DNA of 64,000 nucleotides, from positions 110,579-174,578 of the forward strand of contig NIVC01002432.1 in the NCBI GenBank assembly GCA_002269645.1. Reading direction: 5' to 3'. The notes under the pieces are model-generated. The model did not search any database and had not been told where the DNA came from. It saw only the letters and a program-made list of their open reading frames with translations. Of the stretch, positions 17,901-34,500 are shown one piece after another. Made by a program: the position numbers and the translations under genes. Numbering within the stretch: position 1 is the stretch's first letter; every line of letters starts with the position of its first letter. This DNA comes from Macrostomum lignano (taxonomy: Eukaryota).

Positions 17901-20900
17901 CTAACCAGAGCCAACTCTGCTTAACTTACAGCTATAACCAATTTAAAAGAAGAAGAATAATTCCTATTACTAACCTGTGACCTGCCTTTCAGGCCATCCA
18001 TCAGAGTCAGCAGCTGGGACACGATGCGGCGCTCAACTTCGCCGTGAGTTTTCTCACGCTTAGGCGCAATAGCGTCCAGTTCGTCGATAAATATAATAGC
18101 CGGAGAGTTCTTCTCGGCCTCTTCGAATGCTTTGCGCAGATTGGACTCGGACTCGCCGGCCAGTTTGGACATAATCTCCGGACCGTTAATCAAGAAGAAG
18201 AACGCGCCGGTCTCGTTGGCAACAGCCCTAGCGATGAGGGTCTTGCCAGTGCCAGGCGGGCCGTAGAGCAGAATGCCGCGCGGCGGTTTCACTCCGATTG
18301 ATTTAAACAGCTGCGGATGACGCAACGGCAGCTCAACCATCTCCTTGATGATGGCCATCTGTTTGCGGCAGCCGCCAATATCTTCGTAGCCAATATCGTC
18401 GGCTTTGGATTCTTCTTCTTCGCGTTTGTGCGGCTCGCCTTCAAAATGGATAACGGTCTCCGGGGCCACGATGCAGTAAGGCGACGGGTCGGTCTCTTTC
18501 ACCTGAAGATTGAATTAAAAGTACCTATGTACTTTCTCATGCTAGACTAACCTTTGAAATAACAAAACCGGTCTTGACGTCCTGGTTAGCGGGGCAGGCC
18601 ATAGACTATCGCTGACATTCCAGCCAAGAAGGGAGCATTTCGACTGTACAGTGGCTTTGCTGTACATCATACTGTACATTGCATACCAGCTAGATTGACC
18701 AGAAACAATTTTTGAAGCATAAATCAATAACAACAATAGACCAACCAACCAACCTTGAACTCAACGGCGCGCATTCCGCCGCGAACAACAAACACGTCGT
18801 CCTTACGAAGCGGCCTGTAAGCCTCTAGAAAGTAGGGCTTCAAATAGGTCTCGAATAGGTTGCCAGTTAGGCCTTCAACGCAATCGTCGAATGGTAGAAC
18901 GTGAATTTTGCGGCCAAACTCCACGTTCGGAAAGGCCTATAAGTATGAATGAATGGGGATGGGATAGATAGATATCGACATAGAAACAACTCAATCTTAG
19001 TAATGATTGTACCGTAGACGTATGATGTGCTCCTATCTGCCAGCGGCCCAGGCTCGATTCCAAGGGCAGTCTCATTAATTTAGAGCTAAATTGGAATCTC
19101 GGCTTAGCTCTGCTCTTGCAATTAACGGCCTTGAGGCGGCCAACCCCCAAGGCACAGTGAAGTGAAACTTTTGTGCGAGTTTGCCTGTGACTATGACTGC
19201 GTACATATCCGCGCGCTTGTGTGTCTGCTTAGGGGAGTCGGCGGAATGGCAGCAATGCCTCTCGCTGGTTGTCAGAATGTCGCTCAATAATGCTTCTTAT
19301 TTCCAAATCACACTTGCGCCAGTATTATTTACCTGAACGCTGACAACGTCGCCAACTCGAACGCGCAGATTGTTGCGCACGCAGCGATTCATTCGAATCC
19401 GATCGTTGGGACAGTTAGCCTCGGGCAGTACAATGCAAACAGTGTCGCGCCTCTTCTTGCCTTTCAATAGCACCGTGTCGCCTTTGAATAGTTGCAATTC
19501 GTCCATCTTGGCCTGGGACAGGCTCACTACAGAATTGTCATCGCTGGTTGCCTCCTCGGCGATGAGGCGATTCGGCCGGCGCTTAGTGCGCAGAATGGCC
19601 GTCTCGAGCTCGTCTTGGCTGCACAGAAAAGCCAAATTGCATTGGGATGGCAATGATAAATCAGTTGGCTACTGCCTCAGTAAGCTGTTCAGAGCATAGA
19701 TAGATAAATTATACACTTCTTATAAAATAATTAAAACCCAATTCTTGACTGTACTATCTAGACATGGAAGGCTGCTAAAATATTGGTAAGATATTGTTTC
19801 CATATAATCAGTTTAAATGAATCAGTATAAGAGAAAGTAAAATTATCTTAAAAAGTATATTCATTATCACTAATTGTGACCATCTGCAATATGGAAATAA
19901 TTTTCTGTAGTAAATTTTACTTTGAATAGCAAAAGTATTTAAAGTGACTTTTCATTATTTATAGAACTTTTGAGCACTTCAATTATTTTAGCTTCATTCA
20001 ACTTTTAAATTAGCACAATATTTTAGTGTTTTAATTTTGTAAATATTATTTTAACAGATTTGTTTTATTTTTACTATCATTTTCTTTTAAATGAACCTTT
20101 TATAACATAAATAGTATAATATAAGATATAAATATAGTATAAATAAATAAAAGAAATATCCATTCACTGAAACATCTTATTGCCCATAATTTATGTACAT
20201 AAAAATCTAACAGTTGATAATTTAAGTTAAGCTAACAAATAATTATATATTTTGCAAATTTTCCAAAAGATAGGCACCACATGCAATAAAGACCCTTGAG
20301 TATAATGATTGTGATCATAAGATAACATAATGACATGTCCTTTTTGAATGAATTTTGATTACAATATTTCAGAAAATATAATAACCTATTATGTAATATT
20401 TCTTGAAATCTAAAAGCCTTACTAGGAAGAAAAAAATTAACTATCTTCAAAGGCTACCCAATAGAATTATTTGTTTATTTATTTTTTTGCTTGAATTCCG
20501 TTCCTTTGTTTATTAGAGTCCAAAAAATGAAACATTGAACAGATAAATTGTTTAACATATACCTTAGTAGCTAGGTTTATTTTGTGCAACAGGGATACTA
20601 TATAATATTTTAAATTTCTAAATTGCATCTTGAAATTAGACCTTGGCATACATGCACAACCTTGGGAATCACTTGGCTGTTTCTATTGGCAACACACACA
20701 TGTAAGTTGCTATTGGCTGAGAGCAGTCACGTGACTACTATTCCATCCAATAGCAACTTACAAGTGTATATTGCCAATAGAAACAGCATATACCTTGGAT
20801 GAAATTTTGACTTGGATACAAGACTGGCAGCTAAATTGTTTAATATAGTCTATCGCCACATTGCCATGCTATGTAGGGTAACCTTCATGTTCCCAAATTT

Positions 20901-31552: not shown

Positions 31553-34500
31553 ATGAATCAAGAAGCAATTTATATATTCTTGATGGACAATGGTTCCATT
31601 CATACAGTAGATGCAGGCTTCTTAAAAAGAAGGTGAGTGACTTTTTATTTGTATCTAAAATAGCATTTAGGTATTTTTTCTTACTCTAATGAATTATAGG
31701 TCCATTGTGACCTACATTTTCCTTTATCCTTATCTATTGCTATGTATATTTTTATGTAATGGTAGCCTATTCATATTCATATCAAATCTGTATAACTACT
31801 TAATTTCCCATAATTTTCCCCAGATAACTTTTAACAATTTTAAATCCAATGTCCCTAGTTTCTCACTCATTAACAGGTCTCATTTATTTATTGTATTTAG
31901 AAGAATGACTGGGACTGCATTCACTGCATTAACTTTAGCCAAATGTGGCATTAAAAATCTGTTTTGCTTGAGTCCCTAAGCCCAGGGGACTACCCCCCCC
32001 CCCACCAATGAAATTAAGGGCCCCAATGGTCTTTTAAGTCTCAGTTATTGAAAGGCCAACTATCACTAGATAGAACTAGATCTGGGAGTTATGTGTTCCC
32101 ATAACTACACTTGTAGCTGTATCCATAGACCAGAGCTATAGCAGGGCCCTATTATAAAGAAACATAATATTATGATTTCAAATTTTAGCATCACAGTACT
32201 GCAGGAGGAGCTTCAATCTGCATTGAATGTTCCAATAGCTAATCAGGTGCTTTTAGCCTCTGGCGGCGTCTATATGCAGGGTAGCAACCTGGTTGAGCAG
32301 TACCATGTTGGTCTGGTGAGTACACTCGGTATTTGGCTAATATTCCTACAGGATCTAATAAGACCTGTTGCTCATCCTAGTTATAGATCCTAGAATTTGA
32401 TTGATTAACAGTTTAATTCTGTGTTAAATAGAGCAGCAGAAGTCATTTCTTAGAAAGTTTATTTTCGAATTTGTGACAATTTCGGTAATGTGAAGTGATC
32501 TAAGGGCTTAAGCTTTAATGCGCGATGCAAATATCGAACTCGGCTAGCGCTTCCTATCCATGGCTTCGCTGCCTGTGCTCACCCTAGCAACCATTCTACC
32601 CGCAGGACCCGGGCAATCCGATCTTCCTATTTAACGTGGACAGCATTCGCAGTGACAGAGCGCCCGTGGCCAGCACGCTCGCGGCCAAGCACTCCGACAT
32701 CTGCGATCGAGTCCGCGTCTCTGTGGCACAGCAGGCAGCTACCGCTGAATGCCTAAGGCAGCGCGTGGCACTCGCTGAGGTGAGCGCTGGGAATTTTGCC
32801 AGTTGATTGGTTGAATTGATAAGCTAGGAGGTTGCAGTTTAGGGATTTGCGCATGTTAGTGCAAGTTTGAGGATTTGGGAATATTTGTGTGTGTTAGTTT
32901 TCAAGATTCGGGAAGATTTGTGTGTGTAAATTTTGAGGATTTGGGAAGATTTGTGTGTGTAAGTTTTGAGGATTTGGGAATATTTGTGTGTAAGTTCTGA
33001 GGATTTGGAAATATTTGTGTGTAAGTTTTGAGGATTTGGCAATATTTGTGTGTAAGTTCTGAAGATTTGGAAAGATTTGTGTGTAAGTTTTGAGGATTTA
33101 GGAAGACTTGTGTAAATTATGTGTAAGTTTTGAGGATTTGGCAATATCTGTGTGTAAATTAGAGGATTTGGGAAGATTTTTAGTGAGTAAGTTTTAAGGA
33201 TATGGAAAGATTTTTAGTGAGTAAATTTTGAGGATATGGAAAGATTTTTAGGAAGTTTTGAGGATTTGGGAAGATTTTTAGTGAGTAAGTTTTGAGGATT
33301 TGGGAAGATTTTTAGTGAGTAAGTTTTGAGGATTTGGGACGATTTTTAGTGAGTTTTGAGGATATGGAAAGATTTTTAGTAAGTTTTGAGGATTTGGGAA
33401 GATTTTTAGTGAGTAAGTTTTGAGGATTTAGGAATATTTTTAGTGAGTAAGTTTTGAGGATTTGGGAAGATTTTTAGTGAGTAAGTTTTGAGGATTTGGG
33501 ACGATTTTTAGTGAGTAAGTTTTGAGGATTTGGGAAGATTTTTAGTGAGTAAGTTTTGAGGATTTAGGAAGATTTTTAGTGAGTAAGTTTTGAGGATTTG
33601 GGAAGATTTTTAGTGAGTAAGTTTTGAGGATCTAGGAAGATTTTTAGTGAGTAAGTTTTGAGGATCTAGGAAGATTTTTAGTGAGTAAGTTTTGAGGATT
33701 TAGGAAGATTTTTAGTGAGTAAGTTTTGAGGATTTAGGAAGATTTTTAGTGAGTAAGTTTTGAGGATTTGGGAAGATTTTTAGTGAGTAAGTTTTGAGGA
33801 TCTAGGAAGATTTTTAGTGAGTAAGTTTTGAGGATCTAGGAAGATTTTTAGTGAGTAAGTTTTGAGGATTTGGGAAGATTTGTGTGTGATAGTTTGAGAA
33901 ATTAAGAAGATTCGTGCGTGCAAGTTCGAGGATTTGGGAAGATTTGTGTAAGTTTCCAGGACTCGGGAAGATAAAAAAGTCTCAACTTCCCAACCCTCCC
34001 GTCGCGGCGCACCCAGGAACTGGCATCCCTGGGCCAGCAGGAATGCAACCAGGCGCAGTGGCTGGTGCGCGATCAGCACCTGCTGCACCAGGGCTGGCTG
34101 GCCAGCCTGGCCAATCTGGACGAACTGATGCAGCGCGGCCGGCCCGAGCACGACGAATTTCTAACCAAAGCTAGAGAATTTCTCGACAAGAAAACTGAGA
34201 TAAAAGCCACTCTGGATAATTTTGAGTCCTGCTTGAACTTGTTGGGCCGAGTGCCAGTGCATCCGGGACTGCTGTCCCAGCATCATCAGCCGCAGCAGCC
34301 GCGTCGCGGCAGTTCCAGCTTCCGTCCCAGGCGAGCTTCATCGCCAGCTGGCCGAGAAGTTGCAGAAGACGACAAAAAAGGCGACGGCAAAGCCACAGTC
34401 AAGGAGGAGGAGGACGCGACGGCTGCCGATGACGACGCGCTGTCGACACCGCCGACGCCAACGTCGAAAACTGATCCCGCCGGGGTTGACGACGAAGTTT

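Follow-up and report, generated by a model that had tools for sequence, protein, structure and literature searches.

A CpG-eroded, AT-rich block around the 5' ends of the divergent genes VCP and RB1CC1 of Macrostomum lignano, a possible footprint of mosaic methylation

Introduction

Mosaic methylation of invertebrate genomes, as read from the observed/expected ratio (o/e) of CpG, is the described system with which the locus reported here is best compared. The locus lies on contig NIVC01002432.1 of the flatworm Macrostomum lignano (assembly Mlig_3_7), in a stretch of 64,000 nt that was analysed as a whole (the window, whose coordinates are used throughout), and comprises a sharply bounded, AT-rich and CpG-eroded block at the 5' ends of the divergent genes VCP and RB1CC1 (FIP200). 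It resembles mosaic methylation in a local CpG depletion independent of GC content, an excess of TpG and CpA in mariner fossils, an excess of transitions at CpG, neighbours that look unmethylated (o/e ~1) and the reported presence of DNMT1 and DNMT3. To judge from its sequence, this single locus, seen in three copies, would work like the CpG erosion that mosaic methylation leaves in animal genomes. M. lignano is reported to keep DNMT1 and DNMT3 and to have low 5-methylcytosine (PMC11292947; PMC9246332; PMC10658182), and a 2022 review calls the genomic methylation pattern of free-living flatworms unknown (PMC9246332). Literature searches returned no description of the present pattern.

Canonical gene-body methylation erodes the exons of housekeeping genes, whereas here the exons are CpG-saturated (o/e 1.05 in VCP exons 2-8 and 0.9-1.1 in RB1CC1 from exon 3 onward) and the eroded DNA belongs to first introns, an outron and transposons. 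In holometabolous insects (honeybee, Nasonia, silkworm), gene-body methylation is biased towards the 5' end, where it lies on 5' exons over a few hundred bases to ~1-2 kb. As in the insect pattern, the signal is found in broadly expressed genes, sets in directly after an unmethylated start site and stays within the 5' part of the transcription unit; the profile found here has this form, with a stable core, eroded arms and a return to o/e ~1 at VCP exon 2 and RB1CC1 exon 3. It differs in that mainly intron and transposon DNA is affected, in a large drop in GC, and in being seen at one locus. Because mosaic, methylation-driven CpG erosion is a known kind of footprint, the proposal in an earlier note on this DNA that the block represents an undescribed system is not upheld.

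M. lignano serves as the transgenic model among flatworms and reportedly retains DNMT1 and DNMT3. The locus predicts methylation on transposon-laden 5' arms rather than on housekeeping exons, a departure from the canonical invertebrate gene-body pattern, and, in a genome duplicated not long ago, provides a natural experiment on how base composition is tied to methylation and recombination.

A sharply bounded block in three copies of the locus

Maximum-likelihood change points in GC fall at 19696 (from 0.49 to 0.28) and 32520 (from 0.33 to 0.57), reproducing the abrupt domain of ~19.7-32.5 kb that the earlier note had described (Table 1). With tandem arrays masked, the median CpG o/e per 500-bp bin is 0.19 inside (n=25) and 0.84 outside (n=37, minimum 0.53; Mann-Whitney p=9e-8). 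The deficit remains without a young transposon treated below (p=2.5e-5) and remains against the nine AT-rich bins outside (p=0.001), which rules out that low CpG merely follows low GC. In chunks of ~750 bp, o/e is at least 0.53 in every chunk outside and below 0.4 in 12 of the 17 inside, and no eroded non-satellite chunk occurs elsewhere in the window, the DNA around a FoxF-like exon included. The left edge is a CpG desert: the final CpG of the flank stands at 19611 and the next one at 20499, and the transposon-free stretch 19619-20350 has no CpG in 733 bp. The block is centred, as claimed, on both 5' ends, since VCP has its start codon at 24377 on the minus strand and RB1CC1 has its annotated 5' end at ~31532 on the plus strand.

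The block also lacks long minisatellites. Tandem Repeats Finder reports no array scoring at least 100 between 16781 and 32866; the repeats inside the block are all of 59 bp or less, and arrays occupy 41% of the remaining window. The CpG richness of the surroundings applies to all non-satellite bins (o/e at least 0.53) and to a fragment resembling a long interspersed nuclear element (LINE; o/e 1.27), but not to every satellite, as had been supposed: in some the repeat unit itself happens to contain no CpG, which is enough to explain its absence.

At this locus composition, CpG erosion, the lack of minisatellites and the lack of conversion between copies all change within ~100 bp. Each GC switch precedes a splice acceptor by ~80 bp, that of VCP exon 2 at 19618 (a distance of ~78 bp) and that of RB1CC1 exon 3 at 32606; this symmetric spacing is predicted by none of the models weighed here. 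A border set by the exon/intron boundary itself was rejected, as the downstream VCP introns are rich in GC and CpG and both switches lie ~80 bp inside an intron.

As the chromosomes of the DV1 line are duplicated (PMC5730564), redundant copies of the locus are expected. Among the contigs encoding the matched VCP, which were fetched, the copy in the window (L002) corresponds to 4939-34377 at 100% identity, and homeologous copies of the VCP/ATG17_like (RB1CC1/FIP200) gene pair lie on NIVC01001681.1 (L001) and NIVC01000445.1 (L003). The block measures ~7.5 kb in L001 and ~6.5 kb in L003, and both profiles have eroded arms, a central CpG patch and a sharp return to o/e ~1 at the borders found in the window. 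The abrupt switches might suggest that the borders are contaminated or chimerically assembled, but the chance of this is practically negligible: VCP and RB1CC1 splice across both borders, the three independent contigs are 95-100% identical across them, and their common layout excludes a chimera. L003 also carries extra sequence of its own (at ~10400-11100 and 7600-8600; 446+259 bp plus several pieces of 50-110 bp) at the homeolog positions of window ~24040 and 30600-31150, where the window has none; private insertions have therefore built up in each copy of the block.

Table 1. Coordinates of features at the VCP/RB1CC1 locus (window positions).
Feature	Position	Strand	Basis and remarks
AT-rich CpG-eroded block	19696..32520		12.8 kb in the window copy; GC change points, CpG o/e bins, homeolog profiles
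VCP/p97 exons 2-8 and short introns (left flank)	14939..19618	-	Pfam CDC48_N, AAA; exon map
LINE-like 3' fragment (control outside block), 359 bp	17497..17855	-	Within VCP intron 4; shared by window and L003, lacking in L001
VCP intron 1, left CpG-depleted arm	19619..24360	-	GC 0.35, 21 CpG, o/e 0.15
1.2-kb block, probably an insertion	20350..21573		In L001, absent from L003; holds palindromic MITE-like repeat 20646-20787
Mariner fossil 1	22081..23184	-	Pfam PF01359, E=2.5e-17; absent from L003
Mariner fossil 2, older	23204..24040	+	Pfam PF01359; common to the three copies; CpG o/e 0.15
Ancestral promoter core, left half	24291..24968		Composition, alignment
VCP exon 1, coding part (MAAASN)	24361..24377	-	Start codon 24377
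62-bp miniature element, two tips of the same inverted-repeat family	24723..24784		8-bp target duplication ATTGATGT
Young non-autonomous DNA transposon, 4855 bp	24969..29823		Absent from L001 and L003; terminal inverted repeats; target duplication
Ancestral promoter core, right half	29824..30560		Joins left half once insertion is removed
RB1CC1 upstream/outron region	30561..31535	+	Not alignable with L003; CpGs at 30743-31089
RB1CC1/FIP200-like 5' arm	31536..32605	+	ATG17_like annotation, 1403 aa
RB1CC1 exon 3 onward (right flank)	32606..43234	+	GC-rich, CpG o/e 0.9-1.1, minisatellite-filled introns

CpG-specific substitution within the block

The three copies were aligned, and substitutions were counted only where five ungapped columns stood on either side. 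Between the window and L001, C/T differences in the block affect 15.8% of cytosines in the CG context, against 3.4% in CA, 1.5% in CC and 2.0% in CT; the corresponding values in the flanks are 1.15%, 1.5%, 1.1% and 2.4%. If L003 is taken as the outgroup to polarise changes, the block has 9/78 transitions at CpG and 20/1159 at other G/C sites (p=3.6e-5), whereas the noncoding flank has 1/267 and 14/1335; the contrast between block and flank at CpG is itself significant (p=9e-6). The same excess is found in VCP intron 1, both between window and L001 (CpG 8/46, other 55/1542) and between window and L003 (15/30 and 104/654), and the stretch 30561-31100, non-homologous in L003, is likewise hypermutable between window and L001 (8/30 and 6/84). 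Transitions at arm CpG sites are thus ~5-10 times as frequent as at other cytosines, and the specificity of the C/T excess for the CG context argues against a general strong-to-weak bias. Such a pattern is what the deamination of 5-methylcytosine classically leaves behind. In VCP exons 2-8 and their introns (GC 0.52, CpG o/e 1.05) CpG is not hypermutable, and the claim that distal gene bodies are spared therefore stands.

Decay is also recorded in the sequences themselves. Mariner fossil 1 retains a single reading frame, with stop codons (GC 0.46, CpG o/e 0.14), in which C, H, Q, W or a stop occupies 11 of the 15 positions where its closest homologues have arginine. The summed o/e of TG and CA is 1.55 in both mariner fossils and 1.36 over VCP intron 1, but neither the AT-rich stretches nor the RB1CC1 arm exceed ~1.0-1.1. 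Together, the arginine losses and this excess in fossil 1 indicate classical decay of CGN to TGN or CAN, and the low CpG of the fossils agrees with what had been noted. On the RB1CC1 side, 31101-32509 holds 5 CpG (o/e 0.13). Exons 1 and 2 of this gene have no CGN arginine codon, and a third-position GC content (GC3) of 0.31 and 0.47, whereas later exons have 18-27 such codons each and a GC3 of 0.59-0.70. The rarity of CpG reported for these two exons is therefore real, and the regime reaches synonymous sites of single-copy coding DNA.

Repeat-induced point mutation (RIP) in fungi likewise produces AT-rich, C-to-T-mutated, transposon-bearing blocks with sharp borders beside GC-balanced genes. 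However, RIP acts mainly on CpA in duplicated DNA, whereas here the excess is at CG (15.8% vs 3.4% at CA) and includes single-copy exons.

On balance we think it rather probable, with ample room for doubt, that the arms are germline-methylated, unlike the promoter core and the GC-rich gene bodies, and that the arms lie outside a regime of conversion between copies. The hypermutability would then come from 5-methylcytosine, with transposons as the presumed target. The methylation or other mutational regime put forward earlier is thus borne out by a CpG-specific excess in the block and not in the flanks, but leaves the fall in GC to a second process.

The promoter core

Two CpG patches had been reported within the block, at 24390-25070 and 29730-30270. 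Both bear CpG, but they are parts of one ancestral patch cut by the insertion 24969-29823, and a further CpG-bearing stretch lies at 30743-31089. The two halves of the promoter core together measure ~1.4 kb, and the wider patch (24291-24967 and 29825-31100) has a GC content of 0.31 and a CpG o/e of 0.96. Compared with L003, CpG transitions in the core (24291-24967 and 29825-30560) number 7/66 and those at other G/C sites 27/330; there being no CpG excess, the core appears spared. The notion of spared promoters survives in this form, the two presumed promoters being a single split patch. Rfam and tRNA scans of the block gave only sub-threshold miRNA-like matches on palindromic repeats, and hence no small-RNA gene behind the CpG patches.

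Like a vertebrate CpG island, this patch of ~1.4 kb keeps its CpGs between eroded sides and serves two divergent housekeeping genes. By the usual definition of an island (>200 bp, o/e >0.6, GC >0.5) its length and o/e suffice but its GC of 0.31 does not; it further differs in that the eroded surroundings extend over only a few kb before CpG-rich DNA resumes.

Transposons within and beside the block

The largest insertion is a very young DNA transposon with terminal inverted repeats (TIRs) of 524 bp that are 100% identical (24969-25492, 29300-29823), flanked by an 8-bp target duplication, GTTTGATC, at 24961-24968 and 29824-29831; its TIR family is designated by the sequence CAAGGACTTCTAGACTAG.... 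An intact empty site is found in L001, and L003, which lacks the element too, likewise has an empty site. With TIRs, target duplication and empty site, it has the attributes of a class II DNA transposon, and the 8-bp duplication and long TIRs suggest a hAT- or Mutator-like element. It encodes no transposase (the longest open reading frame, of 92 aa, is of low complexity) and is therefore non-autonomous. A palindrome artefact of PacBio sequencing was rejected, since only the ends are inverted, the 8-bp duplication is clean and a sister mini-element lies nearby. The transposon makes up 38% of the block and has a CpG o/e of 0.29; as its TIRs are still identical, it must have been CpG-poor before landing, and its composition is therefore uninformative about this locus.

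In the window copy only, the transposon interrupts the bidirectional VCP/RB1CC1 promoter and lengthens the ATG-to-ATG distance from ~2.3 kb to 7.2 kb. That one of three promoter copies is split by a 4.9-kb transposon is relevant to the choice of promoters for transgenesis and to comparisons of expression between copies.

If the block were no more than a pile of elements that were AT-rich and CpG-poor on arrival, nothing need have happened in situ. The CpG-poor origin of the 4.86-kb element (o/e 0.29) and the inserted nature of much of VCP intron 1 speak for this, but we regard it as very improbable. The polarised substitutions largely refute it, as CpG transitions occurred at orthologous sites after the copies split; moreover, mariner fossil 1 decayed from arginine codons, RB1CC1 exons 1-2 and alignable non-transposon DNA are eroded as well, and L003 shows the same depletion despite fewer insertions.

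Decay in place by methylation, as favoured above, is compatible with the transposon-directed, spreading methylation of vertebrates, plants and some invertebrates, which the locus resembles in its mariner-dense arms, the decay within insertions and a CpG-poor transposon family. The resemblance is incomplete, because the nearby LINE-like fragment and satellites are uneroded and the coding exons of RB1CC1 are eroded. The LINE-like fragment (GC 0.65, 48 CpG, o/e 1.27, a TTG-rich tail) is one which we take to be LINE-derived from the resemblance of its peptide to a C-terminal ORF2, without a database match; it may be CpG-rich simply through youth. A protein search with the mariner fossil returned eight foreign mariners and no M. 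lignano locus.

Base composition and exchange between copies

Loss of CpG alone cannot lower GC from 0.5 to 0.3, so a second process must be present. From polarised rates, the equilibrium GC is 0.22 in the block (confidence interval 0.14-0.32) and 0.46 in the noncoding flank (0.32-0.62). When the odd one out among the three copies is scored per 500 bp, the nearest relative of the window in the gene bodies switches between L001 and L003: for instance, L003 stands apart 49:0 over 14.5-17 kb, and over 17-18 kb L001 does so 23:2. Inside the block L003 is odd throughout, with a divergence of up to 6-13%. Such mosaic relatedness, restricted to gene bodies, implies that sequence is exchanged between copies there and not in the block. 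Within 12300-19600 and 32500-33000, the window matches one copy at 100% identity for up to 2.5 kb at a time before switching to the other. The mosaic runs indicate ongoing gene conversion between homeologs or haplotypes that stops at the block borders, and a GC bias of this conversion, which we infer, would account for the GC contrast.

The arrangement recalls GC-biased conversion, isochores and homeolog conversion in polyploids, in which the GC-rich segments are the exchanging tracts and the AT-rich segment is non-exchanging and has a lower equilibrium GC. It differs in its kilobase scale and in borders sharp to ~100 bp; the CpG specificity is unexplained by such conversion, and its GC bias is here an assumption.

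Conversion might be the whole explanation, with an unmethylated block that escapes GC-biased exchange between homeologs and drifts towards AT while gene bodies are kept rich in GC and CpG. The mosaic flanks set against a constant, deep L003 divergence in the block, the identity drop at the compositional borders, the equilibrium GC of 0.22 vs 0.46 and a somewhat higher rate of non-CpG G/C-to-A/T changes in the block are all in keeping with this. Nevertheless, we consider it improbable that methylation plays no part. The excess is CG-specific (15.8% vs 1.5-3.4% at CA, CC and CT), and conversion would need to cancel a 5-10-fold excess exactly to leave 1/267 at flank CpGs vs 14/1335 elsewhere. In addition, the arginine-codon decay of mariner fossil 1 is of the CpG type, and DNMT1 and DNMT3 are retained.

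Probable methylation of the arms and a possible role of transcription starts

In the favoured reading, an old compartment of ~6.5-7.5 kb, where VCP and RB1CC1 begin head to head, would consist of a CpG-stable bidirectional core of ~1.4 kb between two arms. One arm is VCP intron 1; the other comprises the outron of RB1CC1 together with its first two exons and introns. DNMT1 and DNMT3 would lay germline 5-methylcytosine on the arms, whose CpGs then decay. Methylation would most likely be placed on the transposon-laden arms, spread by a few hundred bases and be kept off the active promoter. A second process would make the block AT-rich: its substitution spectrum is biased from G/C to A/T (equilibrium GC ~0.22), and the block stands outside the conversion between copies, which homogenises and probably GC-enriches the neighbouring gene bodies. 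Insertions, chiefly the 4.86-kb transposon that landed in the core, have stretched the window copy to 12.8 kb. Transposon-directed methylation with short spreading fits because the arms are mostly transposon debris, the decay that can be tested lies in mariners and one transposon family is CpG-poor.

Several observations weigh against this reading. The counts are small (9 polarised and ~20 unpolarised CpG events, at one locus in three related copies), and most arm CpGs that can be tested lie in the mariner fossils, the non-transposon AT-rich parts being nearly CpG-free. Not every transposon is eroded, since the LINE-like fragment, which lies 1.8 kb beyond the block, is rich in CpG, and satellites are not eroded either. 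Borders linked to acceptors, ~80 bp upstream of them, are not predicted by a pure model of transposons plus spreading. The GC bias of conversion between copies is an inference only. Finally, the promoter core differs between window and L001 at 4/63 CpG and 2/324 other G/C sites, and recent CpG change in the core of the window lineage is conceivable. The four CpG changes concerned (24680, 24875, 29850, 30124) all lie on the window lineage and comprise two losses and two apparent gains, in tiny numbers.

The earlier note had instead proposed targeting to the kilobases that flank the transcription starts of housekeeping genes, with promoters and distal bodies spared. Put as a general rule, M. lignano would methylate this DNA at germline-expressed housekeeping genes whether or not transposons are present. 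The layout is centred in all three copies, including L003 with its fewer insertions, and erosion extends to RB1CC1 exons 1-2 and to the transposon-free 19619-20350. Outside the block, the transposon fragment (o/e 1.27) and satellites are rich in CpG and erosion affects none of the non-satellite chunks of the window (the FoxF-like surroundings included). Both borders lie ~80 bp before the first GC-rich exon, and the promoter core is spared. We nonetheless judge such a rule unlikely, though deserving to be taken seriously. Its evidence is a single locus whose arms are mostly transposon-derived, the CpG poverty of the young transposon points to erosion elsewhere that follows the element family, and the CpG-saturated VCP exons 2-8 are unlike any described methylation of housekeeping gene bodies. 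As most measurable decay is in mariner fossils and transposon-directed methylation fits equally well, the targeting claim was overstated. It is doubtful, too, that the layout holds genome-wide, with DNMT1 and DNMT3 methylating AT-rich, CpG-eroded first-intron and outron collars of kilobase scale around the unmethylated promoters of germline-expressed genes, the remaining gene body being unmethylated and the collars excluded from conversion ("inverse CpG islands"); if true, such a layout is not described in animals.

Genes and smaller features

The VCP/p97 protein spliced from minus-strand open reading frames at 14.9-19.6 kb is 100% identical to M. lignano BOX15_Mlig026283g1. VCP transcription must start just upstream of the coding part of exon 1, within the CpG patch. 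In RB1CC1 the annotated 5' end (~31532) is followed by the ATG at 31553; exon 1 extends to 31632, exon 2 covers 32189-32315 and intron 2 runs to 32605. A TTTCAG acceptor stands directly before the annotated 5' end (31530-31536), 17 nt ahead of the ATG, and is probably a spliced-leader trans-splice site, so that the true transcription start would lie further upstream, in the outron. The gene is identified as RB1CC1 by the annotation of its product (1403 aa) as ATG17_like and by a resemblance of motifs; Pfam found nothing for the RB1CC1 exons, and a homologue search with the C-terminal exon gave no match.

The 62-bp miniature element, 185 bp from the young transposon, is absent from L001 and L003 and suggests recent local hopping or a derivative of abortive repair. 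Palindromic repeats of ~140-190 bp, 81-91% alike, occur in VCP intron 1 (20646-20787) and in the young transposon (26919-27086, 28837-29030); they are probably hairpins resembling miniature inverted-repeat transposable elements (MITEs).

The GenBank annotation leaves out transcripts that overlap repeats (PMC5730564). The FoxF-like exon (12380-13182), which is not called as a gene in the public contig annotation and gave no Pfam match for the part tested, codes for the final part of a forkhead domain and, after it, for tracts of poly-Ala and poly-Gln.

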